A DNA stretch of 64,000 nucleotides from Dimorphilus gyrociliatus (lineage: Eukaryota; Animalia; Annelida). The DNA lies in contig CAJFCJ010000016.1 in NCBI GenBank assembly GCA_904063045.1, forward strand, positions 124,001-188,000, read 5' to 3'. A program made the position numbers and the translations under genes. This document shows positions 1 to 60,884 of this stretch, piece after piece; position 1 is the stretch's first letter, and each line of letters opens with the position of its first letter. The notes beneath the pieces are model-generated. The model had not been told where the DNA came from, did not search any database, and saw only the letters and a program-made list of their open reading frames with translations.

Positions 1-259
1 TATTATTAAAAAAATATTCGTTATATTTATTAAAAATGAACTAGATGAGTATATTATAAACTATATATAGAAAATATAGGAAATATGGGAAAAATTTCCC
101 ATTTTTAGAAATACAGTATTATTCCCAGTGTTTGTAATTATTTGCATTGTATAAATAATATCTTATTGTCTATCCTTTGTATGACGTATTATTTCTTTAT
201 AGTGTAGTTAAATACAATATATGTTATATAGTGTATTTTCCAAAAATATCAATACTTAC

Positions 260-3200
260 AAAATTTGTAAATATCCGAACTAATCTCGGTTTCTTTCCAG
301 GTCTTTCGTATTCAAAGTTAAATGAACTGCCGTTATAATCTGATTCAAAACTTGAAATATCTTTCCAACTGAACTCAATTACTTGGTTCTATGAATGAGA
401 TTATATTTTATTATTGACAACTCCCAAAAAAAATGACCAGCTGATTGAGTAACTTACCTCTACAGTTCCATCTTCTTTGCAGGCTTGTAATCTAAAAGCG
501 GTAAACGACACTCTGGCAACCACGTGACCGTCTTTTCTCGAATCGCACGAACAGTGAGGAAATGCAATTTCACCGTAGTTATCGAACGATGCCACCTCGA
601 GCAAGTATTTGTCAATTCTATTGGCCTTCTTTAAAACATTTATATGGGAAACTTTCGATGGTTTAACTTTAATATTTCCCTTCGAAATATCCTCCGTAAC
701 GTTGTGAAAGACAAATGAACGGGCCAGCTGGTCTTCATATAGTATTTCCTTTTCTAACTCAATGTTAAAAAGCCATTTTTTAAGGGCAATACAAGATGGA
801 GCCGCAGTATTATAGTTTTGAATGTAGATACTATGAGGTTGTTCCTGGTCCATAATTTTACGATCTAAAATACAAGAAACATTCTGGTTGACAATATGCA
901 AAATTCGTATTTAGATTATAAAATAAAGAATATAATTACCGAAATTGGTGTCAACAATTTCAAAAAGTGCAAAATGTTTCGCGATTTCGGTTTTCATACC
1001 AATCTTTTTCGTTACTAACTGTTTTTTGATATTTTTGTTTTTTTATAAAGAAAATAGAAGATAGTGGAACGTGTATATAAAATATTATTTCTTAGCTGAA
1101 CTTACTGAATGAACTTTTCTGGCGTCGGCATCTTTTGATATAATTATACTTGCAATATTTTTATCGGGTAATAAAATCTTGAGTTGAACTTCGCTTTTAT
1201 CACTCGTCTAGTAAAATCATATATAAATATAATATAAGATATGATAATAAGACGCTATCAACTTACTCCATTTTCTGACTGTGTTCCAAGGAACTCCTGC
1301 ATGCCATCACTATCCGCAATTACCCTAACTGAGCATACTTTTTCTAAATATTGTTCTAAACCTCTCCGCCTAGCATCCAATTGTTGTTCAGACATTGTAA
1401 AAGGCCATTTGCCAGGAAATTTTGGAAATTGAAAATCGGGGAATTCTCTTTTTAGAATATTGTGAATGTTAGAAAATTCTCTATATCTCCTTGAACATAG
1501 ATGACGTCCTGCCATGTGTATATGATACACAATAAACCGACTGTCCGAATCACGTAGTGTCTCATAGTCTGGTATAGTTATAGGCAACGACCGCTTATCC
1601 GAATAATCAACTGTTGAAGGTCCGGACGATTCATCCGACGGTTCTAGACGTTCGGCAACTTGTCTTGGAACTGATATAACTATTTTATAAAAAAAATTAC
1701 ATATTAGATAGTCACGTAACAGTTATTAAATATTAGTAAACATATATTTTCTTACCTGTTAATGTCAAAACATCTCCTCCAGATTTTATCAGATCAACAA
1801 CATGTTTGTGGGTGGAACCTTCCACATTAGCCCCATTACTGGAGGAAACCAATAAAATTTTAATTAAAAGTTAATTATGATATATTTTAAGCCGATAAAG
1901 ATTATAATCTGGACAGTTTTTAAATGGAAATAATATATATGGACTACCCAATTGACCAGATCGGTAAATAAAAAGAGAAATATGTAAATTGTAATATGTT
2001 TGTAACAGATGTAATCATAAAAAAAAATTTTCAGCGTCTAATAACAACACATGTGCACCGAAACCATTCAGTTTCCATAAAAATGTCGGAAAGGAACAAG
2101 ATACTCTCTGCTAAGGAACTGAAAGGACAACAACAGAATGATATTCTTTTCTCAACCAAGGAAAAAGCTCATACAGCTGCCGTAGCAACGCTACTAATTT
2201 CTCAAATAGTAATCCTAAGAGAAATCATCAATAATCAAGGCTAGGGTTGCGTTTTTGCCGCTAATTAATTTCTTCTTAAAGTCACCGTTAACTTATTAGA
2301 GACTACTAAGTAGTACTAATAAGTAATCTTAGTTAAAAGAATTATAATAGTTAAGAATGTTTATAATAATTTGTCCTAATAAATTCTATTCATGATTTTC
2401 ATTAAAATAACATAAACGCGACCTTAGACAATAAAAATGACAATAAACAAATTGCAACGATCATTCTAACATGCCTTAGTATGGCTATGGAGATTATCTG
2501 TGGAGCGTTAATAATTTATCAGGCGTATACCAGAAGAAATCTCAAACAACTTTGTCTATTAGGTTATCCAACCTGCTGCGCCGAAAAGATAAGTTCAGTG
2601 GAGAGTGGTGAGGAGAGGTCAACCACAAGCCCTACAGCTAATGGCAACCTTGCGGGAGGTGGAGGAGGAGGAGGAGGAGGAGGAGGAGGAACAACCCAAC
2701 AGCAACAACTAAATTTATCGCCCGACTTATATTTTTTACATTGCACTTGCTCAAGGCATCAATCCGAGGCTCTACACCAGTTAATGCATGTCTACTTACT
2801 TTACAGAGATAAAAGACTTCAAGCAGACATGAAAGTTGTTCGGGCAAATGTCGAAAATGTTACATTAAATAACAAACTGCAGCAAATTATGAAAGATTTA
2901 ACAGCAGTGAGAAAAACAATCGAAGACGAGAAGGAGGAAGAAAGATTGCCTGCCTTAAAAACGAATGAAGAAGAACTTACAAACAATAAAACAAAATGTG
3001 AGCAACAATTAGAACAATATTCCAACGTTGTAGAAGAAACAAAAATAATTGAAGGCCAAGTGAAGGAATTAGAAGAAAATATCTATCAAATGCAAGAAAG
3101 TATTCAACATTCAAAAATGGTTCGGATCGAAAATACAATAACCTATCTTCATTTTTTCGCCTTTATACTCACGGCTTTCATACCTGGTTTACGTACTTAA

Positions 3201-5175
3201 AAGAATACAAATTATGTATCCTTGTATATAACAAAAACTTGGCCGTTACTTCTGTTATCAATTCAAATCAACGTCTAAATTAGAATATTCATATCTAATT
3301 GTATAGCATTCTCTTCTATTGATTTATACTTGTTAATAAATTATTATATATACATATAAACTACTATGATATATTTTATATAGATATAGGAGATTCTCTT
3401 TTTCTATCTTTTAAAAATATAAAGTGTTTAAATGAGAAATATACAGTATAAAGGGAACGTATGGTTTATATATATATAATTGATACAAAATGTCTGATTT
3501 CTGTAATTATTTTAGGATAATTTGTCAATTTCTATGATGCGATAATATGAGTAAAAAAAAAGAGAAAGAAACCATATCGTTTTACTAACAGGTTCTCAGA
3601 ATTTAGTGTTTTTTTTTGCATATATTTATAAGATACGATGTGATATTACAATATTGTTTAAAAATATTATTAATCGTTACTGTTTATTGAGTTACGGTTG
3701 TTATAATGTTTAAGTAATTAACTACTATAATAGGGTTATTTTGTATCAATGGTCTTTTTTGTAGTACATTTTATGCCAGTAATAACTATTTAAGGTGGAA
3801 AAAAAAAACCGTAAGAGATGTATTATTGATTTCCTTAAAGTTATTACTGGATCCTTTCAATGAACATAAATATTTCTCTTCAAAGGATTACTTCGACAAG
3901 TGCAACAAATGTAAAACCAGGCTGAAATGTAAACAATTTTCGTATTGGCTATAATAAATTGTATGGTATAACCTTAAATCTATATTAGAGTCTATATGTT
4001 GCTCATTAGTGGATGAAACTATCTAAAAATAATTTTTTTTATTCAGCCTAAAGACATATCCTTCCGTATTATATCTGTAAAATAATTTCTTTCTATAAAC
4101 TAACTGAGAAAGAAAGGGATAGAAGGAAAGAAAAGAGGAAATACAGAGGCAAACAAAAAAAAAGCCCACATAGAATATAGTTGATTGCATTCGAACAATT
4201 TCCTCAAGGGTTATTATTTTATGAACTTGAAACACATATTCTATACATATAATTTTCAGAATGCATTTAGATCTAGGTATTGTTTCCCCTATCTTTACGT
4301 TCTTGGCAATCGCCATTATTAGGTTTATTTATACTTTAAAATTACTTTTATCTTCATACTTATCTTTGATGTGAATGAAATTTAACATTAATTAAACGTT
4401 AATTATAGTTTTTATTAAGATGTCTTCTTTTTATTCTTTTTTATTATTTAAATAAAACATGTTATAGATTTTAAGAAAAAAAAATCAATCAATATGAGTA
4501 TTTATTTTCTATTCCTAACGCTAATTGGTTAATCTATACGATCTGTACTTCATACTATATAGAATGATACGAGACCAGAAAGTTTTCAATCTCTTCCTGA
4601 TAAAGAATGCCTACAGAGTTCCATGCTATTACCACTATAAAATAAATATGTCAACATTAATTATGCAACCCTCGTTGTCTGTACGGTTTCGACGCTATTT
4701 TTAGCGGCAGAAATTCCTGCCTCTCACCTCATTATGTATTTTTCACTATCAATACACGCCTCCTGTTTGATAAGAAGTACTTACACTTCTAATATTCTAT
4801 CTCCTTTCATGATACCAGCCCGATCAGCAGCTCCGCCCTCCATAACAGCGCTAACATGCTGCAAAGGGGCATATAGTTCTCCATTTATGCTAAAAATATA
4901 AAAAGCATTTATTCACTCTATACGGCTATTAATATCCATTGTCCTCTACTCTAGTTTTGTTTATATAGCTATCATAGAAAGAAGATTTAAATTGAGTATT
5001 TCTCAAGTTGTATTTATAATAGTAAATCTAACCTCTTTAATTGACCTCCCTCACTAACTTGACCTCGAACGTTAAAACCAAACCCAGTATCACTTCTACG
5101 AATTGTAACTATTCGAGGTCCTGCAGGATCTGCCATATCCTGATGATTTTCTTCTTCATCCGAATCTTCTGCCAT
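260..5175 (-). CDS. SNX27: Sorting nexin 27 (PDZ-PX-FERM-like); multi-exon; terminal exon not resolved and may lie left of the window
   Basis: Exon 5175-5033 MAEDSDEE...[29 protein letters not shown]; exon 4889-4785 [36 protein letters not shown]; exon 1838-1756 [21 protein letters not shown] (PDZ). PX domain ...[31 protein letters not shown] (1258-1587). FERM-like part [17 protein letters not shown] (401-901) and [11 protein letters not shown]...[12 protein letters not shown] (~390-260). GT-AG junctions keep the frame. Confidence 0.96.
2481..3200 (+). CDS. Uncharacterised coiled-coil protein with poly-Gly tract and hydrophobic C-terminus, nested antisense in SNX27 intron 2
   Basis: 239-codon stop-free ORF in very AT-rich DNA. 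E/K/Q-rich heptad-like stretch ([22 protein letters not shown]...[21 protein letters not shown]), hydrophobic tail [19 protein letters not shown], and AATAAA at 3335-3340. True 5' end uncertain; possible upstream exon at ~2083-2208. Confidence 0.65.
   Translation: MAMEIICGALIIYQAYTRRNLKQLCLLGYPTCCAEKISSVESGEERSTTSPTANGNLAGGGGGGGGGGGGTTQQQQLNLSPDLYFLHCTCSRHQSEALHQLMHVYLLYRDKRLQADMKVVRANVENVTLNNKLQQIMKDLTAVRKTIEDEKEEERLPALKTNEEELTNNKTKCEQQLEQYSNVVEETKIIEGQVKELEENIYQMQESIQHSKMVRIENTITYLHFFAFILTAFIPGLRT
2661..2690 (+). repeat. (GGA)10 trinucleotide repeat encoding poly-glycine in the nested ORF
   Basis: Ten perfect GGA units read directly from the sequence. Confidence 0.95.
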
Positions 5176-52150: not shown

Positions 52151-52744
52151 TTATATTTCTGGGCGATCAGATGGTGGAGCCAATTTGTCGTACTGGATGT
52201 TTGGGCTGTAGAACTTATATTGATCAGTTGGCTTCATCTTTGTCCAGGGTTGCATGTTATTCTTGTGATCCCACGACACATCAGGGTTCTTTAGAGCCAA
52301 TCGAGTCAAATATCCAAAAGCTCCAATGGCACCACCTCCGATAGCAACAAGAAGTGGAATGAGCTGAAAGGACAACATATTTTATTAGGCATTGTTAGTT
52401 GAATAATTTCTAGGAATTGGTTTTTCAGACGTCATCGATACTTTGTAAAAAAAAAGAGGCTTCATAGTTTAGCTATTTTAAGGACTTTTAACACCGGGCT
52501 GTCTGAAATGACCATCTAAAACACACTACAGATCGATTGAACAATTTTGTTCAGCATTCCGAGTTTTGAGGTTGGATTATGAGAGGAAATAGTGAATGAA
52601 TGTCATTAGGTTACTGAACCAAATATCGGATAAACAAGGGATAACCATATAGCGCCCCGATCGTGCACCTTCATTGTAGTAAAAAAAAATTCTTATACTA
52701 ACCGCTGGGTGCTTTTTCAAGCTGTTAGCTGTCAAACCTGGCAT
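52151..52744 (-). CDS. NDUFA4: NDUFA4/COXFA4 (cytochrome c oxidase subunit); 2 exons (52744-52703, 52363-52151)
   Basis: [14 protein letters not shown]|[40 protein letters not shown]...QYKFYSPN. Confidence 0.95.
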
Positions 52745-53021
52745 AAGACGCATTTTGCCTGCTTATTTATCTATCAAGTATACAACGTAAGATTTTACCA
52801 AGGTCTCTTTACCGGATACAAAGGTTTCTGATCTCATTTTCGTATATTTTTTTGCACTTTTACATTTTTCTAAGATAAAAATTTTCAGTTAGGTTTTAGA
52901 CTTTATATTGTAACATTTCTTTTAATTTTATACGAACAATATTTGACAATCTCTAACAAATAACGATGACTTCCGAACGTAACATACTAATACCCAAACG
53001 CAAAAATGTTTACGAATGTTT

Positions 53022-53034
53022 CAAAATGGCTGCC
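53022..53034 (+). promoter_or_regulatory. YY1-like motif (CAAAATGGCTGCC), also a minimal ATG-GCT-GCC-TAA upstream ORF, in the NDUFA4 / annexin-fusion divergent promoter
   Basis: Motif match read from the sequence; a donor-like AG|gtatat follows at ~53054. Confidence 0.35.
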
Positions 53035-53235
53035 TAACAACCAACTAAATTAGGTATATATTTATTATTATATCTTTACTTCAGTTGTTTAAAAGTAAGA
53101 AAAAATAGCAACATTTAGATTAAAGCCATTTTTCTATTGATAGAGAAACTTTGAAGAGATCTTAAGTGCGTAGAAAGACTTTTATTTAAATAATTAAGAG
53201 GAATTGGTAAAAAAGTAACCTTCCAAGATAAAAAT

Positions 53236-56200
53236 ATGCCAAGTGCAGGAGCTCTAATTGCACCGGTAATAACCACAATTAGCAGAGATGGTCGATCTGG
53301 ACAAAAGATTGATACGTCCACATTTGTAATGCTTGATACAGGTACGTGAAATTTAATAAATAATACATAAAAGTTATTTAGGAGCATCTGCACATAGCAA
53401 CCAAGTGTTACCTAGTAAAATAATAAAATTACAACTAGAGTTTTATACATAACTAACTTATAAATCTAATAAATCAGGAATGTTTAAGACAAATAAAATA
53501 ATTCAGAAAATAAACTATTTATATCGTTTCAGATTCACAAAATTGTAAAATGTACTTTACAACCGACGGTACGAAGCCCAATCCTTTCCAATTAAAATTG
53601 GCAGGAAGAGAGGTAACTTTTCGATACAGTGGTCCATTCACCCTTAAACCTGGAAAAAGAACCCTAAAAGCCATAGCCGTTTCTCGAGATGGCCTACAGG
53701 AGAGTAATGTTGTGACCAGGACTTTTAGTGTTGACGATGTTGGTGAACCCACTGAAGCTGATGAAAATTGGTTGGCATCTTTAGATGAAGAAGATTTAAA
53801 AAGGACCAGAAGAAGCTGTCCTACGATTAGTACCGGCGTTCCTAAAATGACTCATTCATCAGTAAGACTTTAGTTTTACATAAAGTTTACAATCCTTACG
53901 CGCATGATTAATTCCTTATCAGAAATCAAAGATAAAAGAAGCATGGGGAAATACGACAGCTTCCTATATAAGTCATTCGGATGGAAAACATGAACGTTAG
54001 TATATTTATATTTACACTAATATTCTTTTTAAGAAAATGTTTACTATGCAGATGTCCCTGGTGTTGATGGGCCAACTGAAAGTCATGTCCAAGTTCCAGA
54101 AAATGGAGGATTTATACCTACTAATTATAGTGGAACTCAATATAATTTTTGGGGAGTGGCTCCAGCAGCATTTCCAGCTCCAGGAAATGGAGTTAGCTAT
54201 CCATATCATTCTCAATTGGGCTCCATGACTCAACAAATGCTAAACAACTTGAACAGAAATTCTCAGCAAATCTCTGTAGAAGATATGAGAAAAATGCTTC
54301 AAGAAGAGGCAAAAAAGGCCTTACCACCTCCGCAACCGGAACCGAAAATTGTAGAAGTTGAACGAGAGCCACCGTTAAAAGATAGGAGTAGCGGATCATG
54401 GAGAGAACAAGTGGATCATTTGTACGCGCATATAATAGACAAATGCCAGAAAAATGCTAATCTAAGAGCTAAATTTGCAAATTCCAAACTAGGACGAGTA
54501 ACTTCTGTTGAATTTGATGGTGAAGAAAGAGGTTTTCTTCTCACTGTTGCTGTCGCAAGAACTGGTAAGAGAATAAAGTGAAAATAAAATAACTATTGGA
54601 AGAATCTAATTGTTAAATAACTATTTTGCTTATTAGATAAACCACCGCCAACAGCCAAACCAGTCAAACCAGTCAAACCTCCATCACCTCCAAAACCAGC
54701 TCCTGCTCCAGCTCCAGTAAAAGCGAAACCTAAACCAACAGTTACAAAAACAAAGAGACCGATTGTGCCTCCAAAGGAAATGAAAAAAGAGGAAAGATTA
54801 AAGAGAGAGGATCCATACTTTGTTCAGGAAGACTATGAAGTAAGTTTAAAGAGAATATTAGCGTTTCCTCTGCGTATTTTTCATCTTTCTTTTCAATATT
54901 AACAATAAGATGTATAGTATATCTAATGATTAAAAAGTCACATACTAAAGTCGATTTTTCATATTTCTCTATATTCTTTATTACAAAATCTAACCAATAA
55001 ATAGCAGGATAGGAGAAAGAAAAAGAAAAAAGTATTAAAAGTACCGAAAAAGTCCTATGTTGATTCTTACTTTCTTATGGAAGACTATGAGGTTGAGACA
55101 CCGCAAAGTTTTATAAGATTGATTTCTATGTGTTGATCCGAAACTTATTGATTTTCAATTGTCTTTTGCTTCATGAATATTCGTAAAAAATTATAACAGT
55201 AAAAATTTAATTAGGCAGTAATTTATTAGCTTCTCTTCAATGTAATTCTATATTTTAATGCTAATTTTTATTATTTAACAGCAAGAGGGAACTTTAAAAC
55301 CTTGGCCGTCGTTTAATGCCGAAAGAGACTGTGAAATACTAAGAAAAGCTATGAAAGGAATAGGAACGGACGAGAAGGCAATTATTAATGTAATGACTTA
55401 CAGATCCAGTGTACAACGTCAGGAAATTTACACGATGTTTAAGACAATGTTCGGAAAGGATCTTAAAAAAGAATTTGATTCCGAGCTTAGCGGAAATTTC
55501 AACCAAATTTGTCAGGCTCTTTGTCTTGGAGCAGCTGAGTATGATGCTAGTGAAATTCATAGGGCAATAGATGGACTGGGAACAGACGAAGATGCCCTTG
55601 TTGAAATACTTTGCACGAGAACCAACCAACAAATAGAGCGTGTAAAACAGCTCTATAAGAAGATGTATAATGTTGAAATGGAGAAGGACGTTATCGATGA
55701 TACTTCTGGTCATTTTAAGAGATTACTTGTGTCACAAATTCAGGCAAATAGAGATGAAAGCACGAAATATGACCAAACGGCTGCCAAAGCCGATGCTAAA
55801 GCGCTGTATGATGCTGGTGAAGGTAAATGGGGAACGGACGAGAGTAAATTTAATGAGATACTCTGTTCAAGAAGTTTTGCTCATTTGAGAGCAACTTTTA
55901 ACGCTTATGCAGAAATTAGCAAGAAAGATATTGAAGATGCTATAAAGAGTGAATTTTCCGGAGATATAATGCAAGGTCTATTAGCGGTAGTCAGATGTAT
56001 TAGAGATAAGCCAGCATACTTTGCAAAACGTCTTCAGAAGGCAATGAAAGGTCTAGGAACAGATGATGACGCCCTCTTACGAGTAGTCATTACAAGATGC
56101 GAGTGCGATATGGTTCAAATAAAAGAGGCTTTTCAAAAGAACTACTCGGGATCTTTGGCTGAATGGATTAAGGATGATACATCTGGAGACTATCTAGAAG

Positions 56201-57322
56201 CTTTATTAGCGTTGATTGGAGAAAGAGCAGCTCCTGTACCATCTGCGGAAGATTTAGCCGAAGCTGAACCTGAACCAGAACTTGAAGAATATGAAGAAGA
56301 GACATTACCAGAAGACCCCACGCTTTTACCAGCCGACCCATTTGACCCTAAGAGAGATTGCGAGATTCTAAGAAAAGCAATGAAAGGCTTTGGTACAGAT
56401 GAAGCTGCAATAATAAGTGTTATGGGGCATAGATCGTTCGAACAAAGAGCAGATATAGTGAAAATGTATAAGACTATGTTCGGAAAAGATTTAGTCAAAG
56501 AGCTAAAGAGTGAAACTTCCGGCAACTTCGCTCAGCTTTTAGAATCCCTTTGCCTTGATGCAATCACTTTTGATGCTAAGGAGTTAAAGAAAGCTATGAA
56601 GGGTATGGGAACTGATGAGAATGCGCTAATCGAAATAATTTGTACCAGGTCGACAGCACAAATGGCTGCAATTGTGGAGAGATATAAGGAATTATATAGT
56701 AAAACTTTAGAAGATGATATTATATCTGATACATCCGGTCATTTTAAGAGACTTTTAGTGGCTCTTGTACAAGCAAACAGACCGGATACGGGTAATACTA
56801 TAGATAGAGCAAAGGCAAGAAAGGATGCAAACGATTTGTTTAAAGCTGGTGAAGAGAAATGGGGAACAGACGAAAGTAGATTTAATGTTATACTCTGTTC
56901 TAGAAGTTTCGGCCAATTAAGGGCAACATTTGAAGAGTACCAGAAACTGAGCAACAAAACTATAGAAAAAAGTATAGAAAGCGAGATGAGTGGAGATCTA
57001 AAGAAAGGAATGCTTACTGTAATTGCTTGTATTAGAAATAAATCAGAGCAATTTGCCAAGATGCTACATAAATCTATGAAAGGGTTAGGAACCGATGACA
57101 ATTCCCTTATACGTATTCTTGTGACAAGATGCGAAGTTGATATGGTTCAAATAAAGGAGAAATTCCAGAGTCTCTATAAACAAACCTTAGCAGAATTCAT
57201 TAAGGTAAAGCATTATTGATTTTTTTTAATAATTGAAACTCTCACTCATTATTCCTCTTTTAATTAAATAGGACGATACATCCGGAGATTATAGGAAGTT
57301 ACTTCTCTCGCTAATTGGTTAA
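53236..57322 (+). CDS. Chimeric protein: DZANK1-like N-terminal Fn3-type domain + linker + Pro-rich segment + double annexin core (8 repeats); 8 exons, ~1,093 aa
   Basis: Exons 53236-53341, 53533-53861, 53923-53995, 54052-54564, 54637-54839, 55008-55091, 55282-57204, 57272-57322, all GT-AG and phase-compatible with no internal stop. N-terminus MYFTTDGTKP...FRYSGPFTLKPGKRTLKAIAVSRDGLQESNVVTRTF; eight GxGTDE/KWGTDE annexin repeats. Confidence 0.85.
53407..53419. promoter_or_regulatory. RFX/X-box-like element in intron 1 of the annexin-fusion gene
   Basis: GTTACCTAGTAAA (12/13 match to GTTACCTAGTAAC), with ATAGCAAC half-sites at 53105-53112 and 53394-53401. Confidence 0.45.
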
Positions 57323-58008
57323 AGCTATTTTTCCCTACATTCTACCTTCTCATCTTTCCATCTTTTCTCCAAATTCTGAGACTTACATAAAAACGTTTTC
57401 TTTTTTTTTAACTTTTTTGTTAACTCTTGTGCTTGTAATATTTTAAAGATTTCAATGTTTTAGAAGAAAACCATCTGTATGAGATTCAATAGGCAGACTT
57501 TTTTTTAAAAATAGAATTATATACAATTTTCCGTATATAGTATGTACATTGATATATACCATATAAGTATATTAGTATATTTTCTATTATATAATAATTG
57601 ATTACAGACAGTGGCTATACAACTAAACCTTTCTCTTTCTGCTTTGTTTTCTTAAAGTGATCTGCCTGCAGCTAAAAATATACATACCCTTTATAAGTTT
57701 TGTATTTATTTCATAAGTTATATATCTATTCATTATATACTTCATTTTATTAAATAAATCACCAAACGTTCGTTTGAAAGGACAAATGATAAAAGAGACG
57801 AGACAGTAAGTTCTCTTTAGTCTGGTTTCATGTTCAAATTATTAATAATAGGAATACATTTTTGTCGTGAAAAAAACGGTGAATTAGTTACCTATTCCCA
57901 CTTCTAAATGAATCTTAATTTAAATGGTCTGTTAGAGTTACCAGTCTACAGGTATTGCGATGGTAACAGGACGCTTTACTGGATAATAGTTGTCCTGATG
58001 TAATTTAC

Positions 58009-60884
58009 ATGTCGTTAAAAAAAGGGAAAACGATGAAGGAGATGAATCAGGACAATTGGTTGACGGGACGTCCTAGTGTCATTCCACATCCTCCACCGTT
58101 AAATATAAAGGTAAAAATTGAAAGAAGGGCAGACGTCCTTTTGGCGCGTGCTGAAGCTCAGTTTAAAGAATCCAAAGCCAAAGTTGCAACCGCCAAAGCT
58201 TTAAAAATTCCAAACAGAGAAGAAATAGAATTAGCAGCGGCAAAATCTGAATTAGCTTTCAAAGCAATGAAAAAGTTATATGCGGAAATTGAACACGCCA
58301 AAGATGAACTTAGAAAAGCTGAAAATGCTATGGAAATGACTAGGTGTAGAAAGAGGGTTGCATGGCTTCATGACAGAATGCATAAGACGGTTGTAGTCCA
58401 GCAATCTTTAAATGAAAAGAACTATAATGAAAGTCAACCAAATATTGATACGTTCTTTGGAAAGGCAAATAAGTCCGATAAGATTAATCGAATTACAGAC
58501 AAGCCTTTGGGATCTTTTCTGGGAAAAATGAAGCTATCACAAAAAGAAGTTAATTTACCGATGGTGTTTGGTAGAGAAGGACCAGAGAGCTTAATTACAG
58601 ATGACGCTCAATATAAAACCGATACAAAAACGTCGGAAATATCTGATTTCGAATTGAGAGAGCAAATCATAGAGAATGAAAGTTATCCTTTAGATTCTTT
58701 ATTAAGAGATGAGTCCAATATTTCCAATGATCAAGAAGGCAAATACGAATATTCAGATGAGAATTTAGAAGAGAGAGGTTCTATTGACAACAATGAACTT
58801 AGTAATACAGACGATGACAATAAAACAGATATCAGAAAGAAAGTCGAGTTTAAAGGAGATTCCTTCTCTGGAGGAAAGAGCGGAAAACTATCTCCTACAG
58901 GATCTTTAGAGTCTTATCCAGATCATCCAGTATTTAGCATTGCAGGTACAAGTATATTCGACGATGAAATTTTAAATATAGTTGACAAATCGGAAATTGA
59001 AAGCGAGAAAACGGGAGAGATTGAAGAAGAATCGAATCATGACGCAGCGTCGTTGTATTGGGAGAGAGAACATAATCGATTGGAAATCGGAGAACAAGCT
59101 GTTCTAGATCAGGATCCAACGTCTTATCACGCAATGGCTATTGCAGTTTCCGGTACATTTTTGACGAAAAAACCCGAAGAGCCTAAGCCTCTTCCGTGGA
59201 ACTCGAAAAACGATTCAAATGTTCATAGATTAGGTATAGAGAAATTTCAACAGAAGTTATTTCGCCTACAAAACGCTGTTTTCGATGCCGCCGGAGAGTC
59301 TATCCCCCGGACGGCGTTTACTCCAAAAGTTGAAAGGATACTAGCGAACGAAAGAGACAGTTCATCTGTTATGGAAATCAAGAATAATAAATTTACTGGA
59401 GATCAGAGATTGGGGACATCCTTTTCAGGAAGATTAGTTTACTATCCTGCTCCTTTAACCCCTCCTGCCATACTGCCTACGACTCGTCTGGTAAGTATGC
59501 TAATTTCTCTAATGAAATAAGAAGAGCTTTGGGAATGATACGATCATTAAAGATACGTCTAACTTTTTCTTTACAGAGCGCAGGAGTAATTGTTCCCACG
59601 AAACCTTCCAAGTATAGCTTTTCTACACCCGATAAAGTTCCATCCGCACAAGGCGTAGCGGAACAGCATAATTTGAAAGACGAAACCAAGCTAACTCTCT
59701 TTAAAGCTAGGCCTGTATTAACAATGGAAAAAACATCTGAATCAATTCCCATCAAACAGAATTTAATGTATAGGCTAACATTAGATTCGAGAGATTCCTG
59801 GGCAAAGATGAAGCCAAGATCTGGTGTTTTAGTTCATTCAGGTATAAAGTGGGAACGAGTTAAAGATTTAGTCGGTCGGGGACTTCTTTCGGAAAGAGAA
59901 GAAGAGAGAATAGATGCTGCAAGGAATTTAGGTATTCTTAATTGTGCTGACACAACAGTAATCGGAGCTTTGAGAAAAAGATTGGAAGAAGATAAGAGTG
60001 AAAGGGTACGGTTTGAATCGTGTGTTAGCCTAATTAAGGCAGGTGCTTGGGATGAAAAGCTTATGGAAAGCGCAACAGACTTTTTAGCTTTGGGTAACAG
60101 TGATATGAGAATGCATATTTTAAAGTCACTAAATATTTCCCCTAGATTGAAATTAATGCCAAATAGACACTTTATTCAAGTTCTTATCCACTTAACAAAA
60201 AGACCAAATAAGAATTTAGCTTTCATGGCTTCAATCATTCTCGGAAAACTTGGTAACTCCGAAGCCGAACCGATATTATTCGAACTTCTCAAAGAGGACG
60301 ACGTCAATCATAATTTAAGAGCTCAAGCCTTAGAGGTGTTAATAAAGGACCTAGGTGAAACTGACAAAATCGTAATAGATGCTGTGTTGAACCAATTATT
60401 GCATTCACCATCTTGGAAGGAAAGAAAGAGTGCTTGCCGTCTATTATCATCACTTGGTATAACTTTCCTCCCGTTAGAAAAGACTTATAACGTATTAGAA
60501 CAAAAATTATGGGATGAACCATCCAAATTAGTCAGAAAGGAATGTGCCGAGACGTTAACCTCACTTGGATTATTAGCAAGAGCAGCGTTGAATACAGAAA
60601 AGAAATTGGAAGATAAGACTGCCGAGGGAAGAGCTCAAGCTGTAATAGCCGTAGGGACTTTAGGAATGCATACAAATAGAATACTGAGAATGCTACTCGA
60701 AATGTTAGAATTAGATTCGAGTGAACACGTAAGAGTCCTTGTAATACGAACTTTAGTGAGCCTGGGAGCTAGGGAGAGTCAAGTCATTAGAGCTTTGAAC
60801 GATAAGCACTCAAAAGGTGATGGAATTCTCTCAAAAGAGGCATCCAAGGCTCTTATGCAATTATCTTCTTCCGCAAGTGCCTAA
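58009..60884 (+). CDS. HEAT/armadillo-like repeat protein with N-terminal coiled coil and acidic disordered region (HEATR4-like architecture); 2 exons, ~929 aa
   Basis: Intron 59491-59576 (CTG|gtaagt...ttacag|AGC, phase 0) joins the two track ORFs. C-terminal helical repeats such as LEEDKSERVRFESCVSL, LWDEPSKLVRKECAETL, LELDSSEHVRVLVIRTL. Confidence 0.8.

Follow-up and report, generated by a model that had tools for sequence, protein, structure and literature searches.

Annexins are built from four or more repeats of about 70 amino acids (aa; PF00191), and the N-terminal head that precedes the repeats gives each annexin its specific partners. Annexins with eight repeats can bridge two membranes. 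DZANK1 is a poorly understood protein that has been linked to ciliopathies. Here, we describe a gene in a 64,000-nucleotide (nt) stretch of the genome of the annelid Dimorphilus gyrociliatus (assembly GCA_904063045.1, contig CAJFCJ010000016.1, positions 124,001 to 188,000 of the forward strand; hereafter, the window, to which all positions refer) that very probably encodes a single protein in which a DZANK1-type head is joined to an eight-repeat annexin.

DZANK1 binds the dynein light chains DYNLL1/2 (PMC4617706) and has been modelled as a dimer, together with an LC8 dimer, on the A-tubule of the ciliary transition zone (bioRxiv 10.64898/2026.06.11.731632). The strands that LC8 recognizes lie in disordered regions and are anchored by TQT; mid-sized residues are favoured at positions -1 and +1, and the optimum found by phage display is VSRGTQTE (PMC6607443).

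The base composition of the window is AT-rich and eukaryotic (about 26-38% G+C). Reading of positions 52900-57400 revealed, on the + strand, an ATG at 53236 followed by seven open segments extending to 57322. All seven exons have GT donors and AG acceptors with pyrimidine-rich tracts, the introns measure 56-442 nt, and the joined exons form a 3,198-nt frame with no internal stop codons that encodes 1,065 aa (Table 1). With an additional 84-nt, phase-0 cassette exon included, the product becomes 1,093 aa; the eight GT-AG exons and the ~1,093-aa protein proposed in a first-pass annotation of the window are thereby reproduced exactly, the shorter form arising from the seven exons without the cassette. 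We read 53236-57322 (+) from its sequence as one protein-coding gene with seven constitutive exons and one probable cassette exon. A pseudogene was rejected because the frame is intact and the conservation strong.

The spliced model is collinear, from Met1 to the last residue, with eleven full-length homologues, including Owenia, P0002 (P numbers are our handles for individual proteins), six molluscs and two rotifers, and in this alignment every splice junction of the model lies in conserved register. Search E-values reach 1e-280 for the annexin part and 1e-108 for the N-terminal part. P0002, the nearest relative of full length, shares 66% identity with the model over the annexin part and is encoded by a single uninterrupted open reading frame (ORF; 179-3457) on a cDNA-like Logan contig of 4,333 nt. 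A 91%-identical relative (ERR14224706), on a genomic contig, displays the same order of ORFs: Fn3_assoc, a 170-aa ORF, a 64-aa ORF and the annexin. At the level of individual exons, the N-terminus of exon 1 coincides with Met1 of the full-length annelid and mollusc homologues (MPSAGA); the start of exon 3 aligns with the conserved KEAW segment, in a region whose homologous counterpart has a predicted local distance difference test score (pLDDT) of about 45; and the tail of exon 5 corresponds to the DP[YF][FY]...E..E motif seen in the homologues from annelids and molluscs. Across the junction 54839/55282 the protein reads EDYE-QEGTLKPW, for which the Owenia counterpart is EEYEQEGTVKAW. Exon 7 matches the C-termini of the homologues (DDTSGDFRKILLALTG in P0002), and the unspliced frame runs into the intron, as in the genomic ORF P0001. 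We hold with high confidence that this is a single gene and that its product is one member of the fusion family.

Table 1. Parts of the annexin-fusion gene and neighbouring features, in window positions
Feature	Position	Strand	Description
Exon 1	53236..53341	+	Start codon 53236-53238; aa 1-35 (MPSAGA...), first strands of the N-terminal beta-sandwich; donor gtacgt
Exon 2	53533..53861	+	Rest of the Fn3_assoc / CHB_HEX_C_1 (GH29D-like) sandwich to about aa 110 (~53757), then start of a disordered acidic/basic stretch
Exon 3	53923..53995	+	Short, weakly conserved, within the disordered region; in-frame junctions
Exon 4	54052..54564	+	Disordered segment with the GTQ motif, two helices, DZANK1-type mid-domain
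Conserved linear motif PTNYSGTQYNFWG	54117..54155	+	aa 192-204; candidate LC8/DYNLL-binding site of the TQT type
Mid-domain	54360..54564	+	aa ~273-340; small alpha-alpha-beta-beta fold, corresponding to about DZANK1 residues 450-530
Exon 5	54637..54839	+	Pro/Lys-rich linker, ending in the conserved D-P-Y-F-x-x-E-D-Y-E before the annexin core
Cassette exon 5b	55008..55091	+	Optional; 28 aa, phase 0; second D-x-Y-F-x-x-E-D-Y-E copy
Exon 6	55282..57204	+	Annexin repeats 1-4 (~55306-56262), acidic inter-tetrad linker (56263-56334), most of repeats 5-8 (from 56335)
Exon 7	57272..57322	+	End of repeat 8 (DDTSGDYRKLLLSLIG); TAA stop 57320-57322
Candidate polyadenylation signal AATAAA	57753..57758	+	Sequence scan; sole AATAAA between the stop codon and the long ORF at 58009
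ORF, 75 aa, single exon	52151-52378	-	PF06522 (NADH-ubiquinone reductase MLRQ subunit / NDUFA4 family), E 1.2e-20
ORF, 503 aa, uninterrupted	58009-59520	+	687 bp past the annexin stop; acidic, Ser-rich; no Pfam match at E <= 1

The relationship of the head to DZANK1 is apparent in two separate domains. Within exon 2, Pfam detects Fn3_assoc (5.5e-10) and CHB_HEX_C_1 (1e-7), both past the cut-off. Exon 2, searched exhaustively with phmmer against 1.84 billion representatives, yielded 356 matches, among which the single-domain ones (residues ~40-110) are of two kinds, annexin fusions and proteins named DZANK1 or DZANK1-like. The latter align at the same N-terminal position with 42-52% identity (E 3e-15 to 3e-7, the best at about 1e-12 to 1e-15) and include proteins of Mya arenaria (P0192), Pinctada (P0161), Macrostomum (P0172), Priapulus (P0226), Tubulanus (P0243), Sycon (P0258) and Ciona (P0275); they carry the Pfam domains DZR and Ank, except that Pinctada P0161 is without DZR. 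Exon 2 also matches residues 41-104 of the solved DZANK1 chain 11xu_G1 (phmmer, E 1e-8). The exhaustive search was needed to reveal DZANK1: a word-indexed search with the 450-aa head of P0002 returned annexin fusions only. In the AlphaFold2 (AF2) model of the P0002 head, the sandwich occupies aa 1-110 (pLDDT 84-97) and is followed by disorder (112-240) and then by a confidently predicted mid-domain (pLDDT 91-96). Thus, the first-pass annotation was right in likening the N-terminal domain to that of DZANK1, on the evidence of Pfam, phmmer and 11xu_G1, and in expecting Fn3_assoc/CHB_HEX_C_1 along with eight annexin repeats, both of which Pfam finds; the extent that it gave to the domain, ~145 aa, has to be reduced to about aa 1-110.

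What follows the sandwich had been described as a low-complexity or helical linker. This part of the protein instead holds a second folded domain homologous to DZANK1, as well as the conserved GTQ motif. Exons 4 and 5 have no Pfam match, and the homology emerges from profile and pairwise comparisons. The exon 4 profile aligns with a DZANK1 profile over 72 columns (hhalign, 99.6%, E 1.4e-24) and, against the PDB, with residues 448-530 of 11xu_G1 (E 4.7e-16), and pairwise BLASTP of Mya DZANK1 residues 471-540 with residues ~293-360 of the fusions gives 37-41% identity (E ~1e-10). An AF2 model of exon 4, made from a 42-sequence alignment, has residues 1-50 disordered, helices at 54-68 and 75-89, and a helix-helix-hairpin at 116-169 with pLDDT of 83-93 (means over 10-residue blocks). 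No credible solved fold matches the mid-domain: the best E-value in Foldseek against the PDB is 1.3, and the best Z in VIA-align over 48,161 chains is 3.7, for the C-terminal domain of cyanase. The DZANK1 entry 11xu, which the sequence search did retrieve, was missing from the Foldseek matches, and we make no claim that the fold is new.

The window protein and DZANK1 therefore have in common an N-terminal Fn3_assoc sandwich at the same position, 44-52% identical to those of invertebrate DZANK1s, and a mid-domain with the pattern SPG.G.W..Q..HI..H......FR.....PK.GK that comes in the same order, after the sandwich and a GTQ motif. Unlike DZANK1, the window protein has no double zinc ribbon or ankyrin repeats, and its C-terminal half is an annexin octad. 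The absence of these two elements, claimed from the start, is borne out: neither DZR (PF12773) nor ankyrin repeats are matched by Pfam at E <= 1 in the pieces encoded by exons 2, 4, 5 and 6, whereas the DZANK1 controls do match DZR. A phylogeny of the N-terminal domain against DZANK1 had been suggested as a check, and a careful tree was built from the sandwich and mid-domain of 18 protostome fusions, DZANK1s and a starfish protein. All 18 protostome annexin fusions fall on one side of a branch (support 94/97), apart from the DZANK1s, with the window protein beside the annelid members, a position that it also takes in a tree of annexin tetrads (see below). Mya, Pinctada, Priapulus, Tubulanus and Macrostomum each possess a canonical DZANK1 in addition to the fusion. 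The separate branch and this coexistence indicate that the head of the fusions is a paralogue of the DZANK1 core rather than DZANK1 itself.

A group of mollusc proteins of about 560-655 aa (P0350, P0352, P0358, P0361, P0374, P0392 and P0161) combines a DZANK1-type head and ankyrin repeats with no precomputed DZR match. They may represent incomplete models, an isoform or a paralogue that lacks the zinc ribbon; one of them, Pinctada P0161, closely resembles Mya DZANK1, in which DZR is present.

In the C-terminal half, Pfam assigns eight stretches of exon 6 to the annexin family (PF00191; E 2.2e-185, 601 bits against a cut-off of 25). The signature of a type II Ca2+ site, that is, a G-x-G-T or K-W-G-T loop followed 38 positions later by an acidic residue, is found in all eight repeats, with repeats 3 and 7 carrying the usual K-W-G-T form of the loop. 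Vertebrate annexin A6 likewise consists of eight repeats arranged as two tetrads and a linker, and is 44-46% identical over the octad, but its head comprises only about 20 aa, compared to 408 aa with two folded domains in the fusion. A provisional tree of individual tetrads (quick search, support from the Shimodaira-Hasegawa-like approximate likelihood ratio test (SH-aLRT), no single-tetrad outgroups) unites the N- and C-terminal tetrads of vertebrate ANXA6 (97) and separates them from all invertebrate tetrads (97). The rotifer tetrads pair with each other (98), the N- and C-tetrads of molluscs and annelids make up separate groups, and the single-tetrad fusions join the annelid N-tetrads (96). 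Because vertebrate and rotifer tetrads each cluster among themselves, octads seem to have arisen more than once. We reject orthology to ANXA6 on the separation of vertebrate from invertebrate tetrads in this quick tree, which was made without single-tetrad outgroups; the label 'annexin A6-like' appears to reflect an architecture, with a likeness that is convergent. As applied to dozens of invertebrate annotations, this label appears to be misleading with respect to orthology, and some of the public models that bear on the family are truncated at an internal methionine.

Searches with the annexin exon retrieved dozens of proteins of ~1,060-1,115 aa with PF13287 (often also PF13290) and PF00191 from molluscs (Patella, Pecten, Pinctada, Mytilus, Haliotis, Octopus and others), the annelid Owenia and rotifers, most of which NCBI names 'annexin A6-like'. 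The parts of these spiralian proteins, such as those of Owenia fusiformis (P0011), Pecten maximus (P0005), Mytilus trossulus (P0010), Octopus (P0032) and Rotaria (P0019), come in the same order as in the window protein: the MPSAGA start, sandwich, GTQ motif, mid-domain, Pro/Lys linker with DPYF, and eight repeats. Identity to the window protein is 57-66% in the annexin part (49-51% for Adineta and Rotaria) and 30-41% in exon 4 (about 23-27% for rotifers). The window protein differs from its relatives in having TQY in place of the TQI or TQV of those inspected, in its shorter disordered region (1,065 aa in total versus about 1,090-1,110) and in its own probable 28-aa cassette exon. Eight-repeat fusions are present in annelids (Owenia, Paralvinella), many molluscs and rotifers, and fusions with about four repeats in nemerteans (Lineus, Tubulanus), Lingula and flatworms (Macrostomum, Schistosoma, Echinostoma, Paragonimus, Anoplocephala). 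A partial model from the orthonectid Intoshia comprises the head and one aligned tetrad.

A protein of Priapulus caudatus (P0141; XP_014664979, 1,288 aa) has the head and at least 11 Pfam annexin stretches, possibly forming three tetrads. If its gene model is right, this protein puts the family outside Spiralia.

A different combination was detected in Ambulacraria, where proteins of about 870-930 aa have a DZANK1-type head, ankyrin repeats and four annexin repeats with no zinc ribbon. This form is found in all five echinoderm classes and in the hemichordate Glandiceps, under names as various as 'DZANK1-like', 'uncharacterized' and 'Annexin A7'. Its members include Asterias rubens P0279 (XP_033629438) and the series P0321-P0331, with Patiria, Acanthaster, Amphiura, Apostichopus and Holothuria as well as Diadema, Lytechinus, Antedon, Anneissia, Glandiceps and Ptychodera; for Ptychodera P0331 (745 aa), only Ank and annexin matches were obtained and no Fn3_assoc. 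Several of the same echinoderm species possess a canonical DZANK1 beside this form, and a canonical DZANK1 is also present in the hemichordate Saccoglossus. Like the protostome fusions, the ambulacrarian proteins unite a sandwich, a GTQ-anchored motif, a mid-domain and annexin repeats in one polypeptide; unlike them, they keep the ankyrin repeats, have one annexin tetrad and carry a motif of the DZANK1 type, GTQTVGLFYPT. The starfish protein groups with the DZANK1s in the head tree, away from the protostome fusions, a position that points to either an older intermediate form or an independent fusion.

The window gene is an ordinary orthologue in its lineage, already present as predicted proteins in public databases. 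Of the first-pass view of the locus as a chimera, the single spliced gene with a DZANK1-type head and two tetrads holds, and the notion of a lineage-specific construct has to be given up, the family being old and distributed over multiple phyla. The concern that automated annotation could miss the fusion proved largely unfounded: NCBI usually captures it in models of about 1,100 aa labelled 'annexin A6-like', and only some models are truncated. That the architecture might exist unstudied in other invertebrate proteomes was correctly anticipated, given that it is widespread in Spiralia and occurs in Priapulus, with no paper on it found. Our literature search returned no description of the head-annexin architecture, and co-mentions of DZANK1 and annexins were incidental only; a term search of a survey of helminth annexins (PMC3795353) gave no match for annexins described as eight-repeat, octa-, tandem or double, and the N-terminal domain came up there in generic terms only. 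As far as could be found, the family is uncharacterized and named by automated annotation only, and its relation to DZANK1 is undescribed.

A third element that the fusions probably have in common with DZANK1 is a short motif between the two folded domains. Its family consensus is N-[YH]-[SAN]-G-T-Q-[IV]-N-x-[WYF]-G, in which N, G, T, Q, N and G do not vary across 42 sequences, and 55 proteins of the collected set carry it. According to the AF2 models of exon 4 and of the P0002 head, the motif sits in disorder. In DZANK1s, (x)-T-Q-T-V-G-L-F-Y-P-S precedes the mid-domain by about 30 residues in species ranging from molluscs, a priapulid and flatworms to lamprey, chicken and human, and the order of sandwich, GTQ motif and mid-domain is the same in fusions and DZANK1s. 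Judging from these sequences, the motif is probably shared with DZANK1. The window motif, SGTQYNFWG, has in common with GTQTVGLF of DZANK1 only G-T-Q and the hydrophobic pattern that follows, and the spacing differs. The T-Q-[IV] of the family would fit the anchor preference of LC8, and T-Q-Y of the window protein would fit it less well.

We propose that, when Ca2+ rises, the annexin octad binds acidic phospholipid membranes and possibly bridges two of them, with the DZANK1-type head, in place of the usual short annexin N-terminus, serving for partner docking and probably dimerization. Dimerization of the head could occur via an LC8/DYNLL dimer bound to the GTQ motif, together with the mid-domain, such that Ca2+-dependent membrane capture would be tied to a DZANK1-type scaffold on microtubules or at the ciliary base. 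The protein would be cytosolic, as its N-terminus has no likeness to a signal peptide; a secreted glycan-binding protein was rejected on the same grounds. Should the head keep the partners of DZANK1, the family would provide a direct Ca2+-controlled link between membranes and the transition-zone scaffold, and the sandwich, GTQ motif and mid-domain would constitute an autonomous DZANK1 module that operates without zinc ribbons or ankyrin repeats. As a whole, the explanation that combines the gene, the family and docking through the head strikes us as reasonably probable; its LC8 and ciliary part is tentative and, in our estimate, falls somewhat short of even chances.

Several observations weigh against this proposal. 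The hhalign alignment covered the mid-domain only and did not bring together the GTQ motifs of fusions and DZANK1s, their distance to the mid-domain being ~80 aa in the former and ~30 aa in the latter, and for that reason we treat LC8 binding as a hypothesis. The fusion motif, GTQ[IV]N.WG, departs from GTQTVGLF of DZANK1 after the first three residues, and the window protein has a tyrosine (Tyr200, 54141-54143) at +1, where all the relatives inspected by eye have I or V. A typical LC8 site requires fewer than six invariant positions, and the motif may therefore have another binding partner. Furthermore, the zinc fingers and ankyrin repeats, which are the DZANK1 elements that were tested with NINL, are absent here, and the searchable literature yielded nothing on the expression or localization of any family member. 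Finally, the splicing of the gene and the use of exon 5b in this species are deduced entirely from homology.

In the main alternative, the same single gene would encode a protein whose head serves for oligomerization or for binding a ligand, for example a glycan or lipid, like the accessory GH29D/CHB_HEX_C domains of bacteria, with the GTQ motif contacting another partner or folding onto the rest of the protein. The closest specific solved fold of the sandwich is indeed a domain of an Akkermansia glycosidase (8ayr_A; 73 columns, root-mean-square deviation 2.3, 32% identity), in many of the phmmer matches, which are long and unnamed proteins, the domain is repeated in tandem 4-18 times, and the invariance of the motif, its divergence from DZANK1 beyond GTQ and the tyrosine at +1 all fit such a head. 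We nevertheless consider it rather unlikely. Two independent folded domains in the same order are common to the fusions and DZANK1 but not to the multi-repeat proteins, glycan binding is not expected of a cytosolic protein without a signal peptide, and in the AF2 models the motif lies undocked in a low-confidence stretch and packs on neither domain.

Docking through a DZANK1-type head admits a broader version, which we regard as unlikely and offer as speculation. The head, with its sandwich, an LC8-binding GTQ motif and a dimerizing mid-domain, would be an ancient portable module that was joined to annexins before the protostome/ambulacrarian split, the resulting proteins acting as Ca2+-switched tethers that clamp vesicle or ciliary-base membranes to the microtubule/LC8 scaffold of DZANK1 at the transition zone, with subsequent loss in chordates, arthropods and nematodes.

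The probable cassette exon, 5b, encodes a basic stretch followed by D-S-Y-F-L-M-E-D-Y-E, a near copy of D-P-Y-F-V-Q-E-D-Y-E at the end of exon 5; no other open phase-0 AG...GT piece of intron 5 resembles the tail of exon 5. A precedent for alternative inclusion of an exon with a duplicated motif comes from Octopus sinensis, where isoform X1 (P0129, 1,127 aa) has two copies and isoform X3 (P0036, 1,082 aa) has one. The motif itself, D-P-[YF]-[FY]-x-x-E-x-E, immediately precedes the first annexin repeat in annelids and molluscs, lying about 10 aa ahead of the core in the homologues; in the window its copies are at 54810-54839 and 55062-55091, and it is duplicated as a cassette both in the window gene and in Octopus. 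The nemertean, brachiopod, flatworm and priapulid members that were checked lack it.

Intron 5, the longest of the gene (442 nt) and the one that holds exon 5b, is also where an internal promoter or alternative first exon would lie if the locus produced an annexin-only isoform beside the full fusion, making the head an optional regulatory add-on. NCBI lists multiple isoforms for molluscs, for example of 1,007, 1,082 and 1,127 aa in Octopus, and a gastropod-like Logan contig encodes P0016 (666 aa), an octad with a short, independent head (MPYVNFKAE). Yet no ATG-initiated exon that joins in frame to 55282 was found in intron 5, and P0016 may be a paralogue rather than an isoform, such that we regard this arrangement as improbable.

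Two public models consist of the annexin only: Capitella P0004 (CAPTEDRAFT_158666, 642 aa) and Biomphalaria glabrata P0035 ('annexin A6', 646 aa). Both start at an internal MKGLGTDE methionine inside repeat 1 and are for this reason taken as truncated predictions, not genuine N-termini, that probably are without the whole head and helix A of repeat 1; the same methionine is the first ATG in the annexin exon of the window and opens its long ORF (55351). A pair of adjacent genes, one a truncated DZANK1-like gene (53236 to ~54581, ending at a TGA inside intron 4) and the other a separate eight-repeat annexin under its own promoter, with the joins between them fortuitous, might be argued from read-through at the exon 4 donor, which meets a stop after five codons (TGA 54579-54581), from these annexin-only models and from the short head of P0016, but is exceedingly improbable given more than 40 full-length fusions from several phyla that are collinear across exons 4-5-6, the EDYE-QEGTLKPW junction included, the uninterrupted ORF of P0002 on a cDNA-like contig and the internal starts of P0004 and P0035.

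The single gene is flanked by two further ORFs (Table 1). The NDUFA4-type ORF lies head-to-head with the annexin gene, ~860 bp from its ATG, which suggests a shared bidirectional promoter region, and the 503-aa ORF downstream is presumably the next gene.

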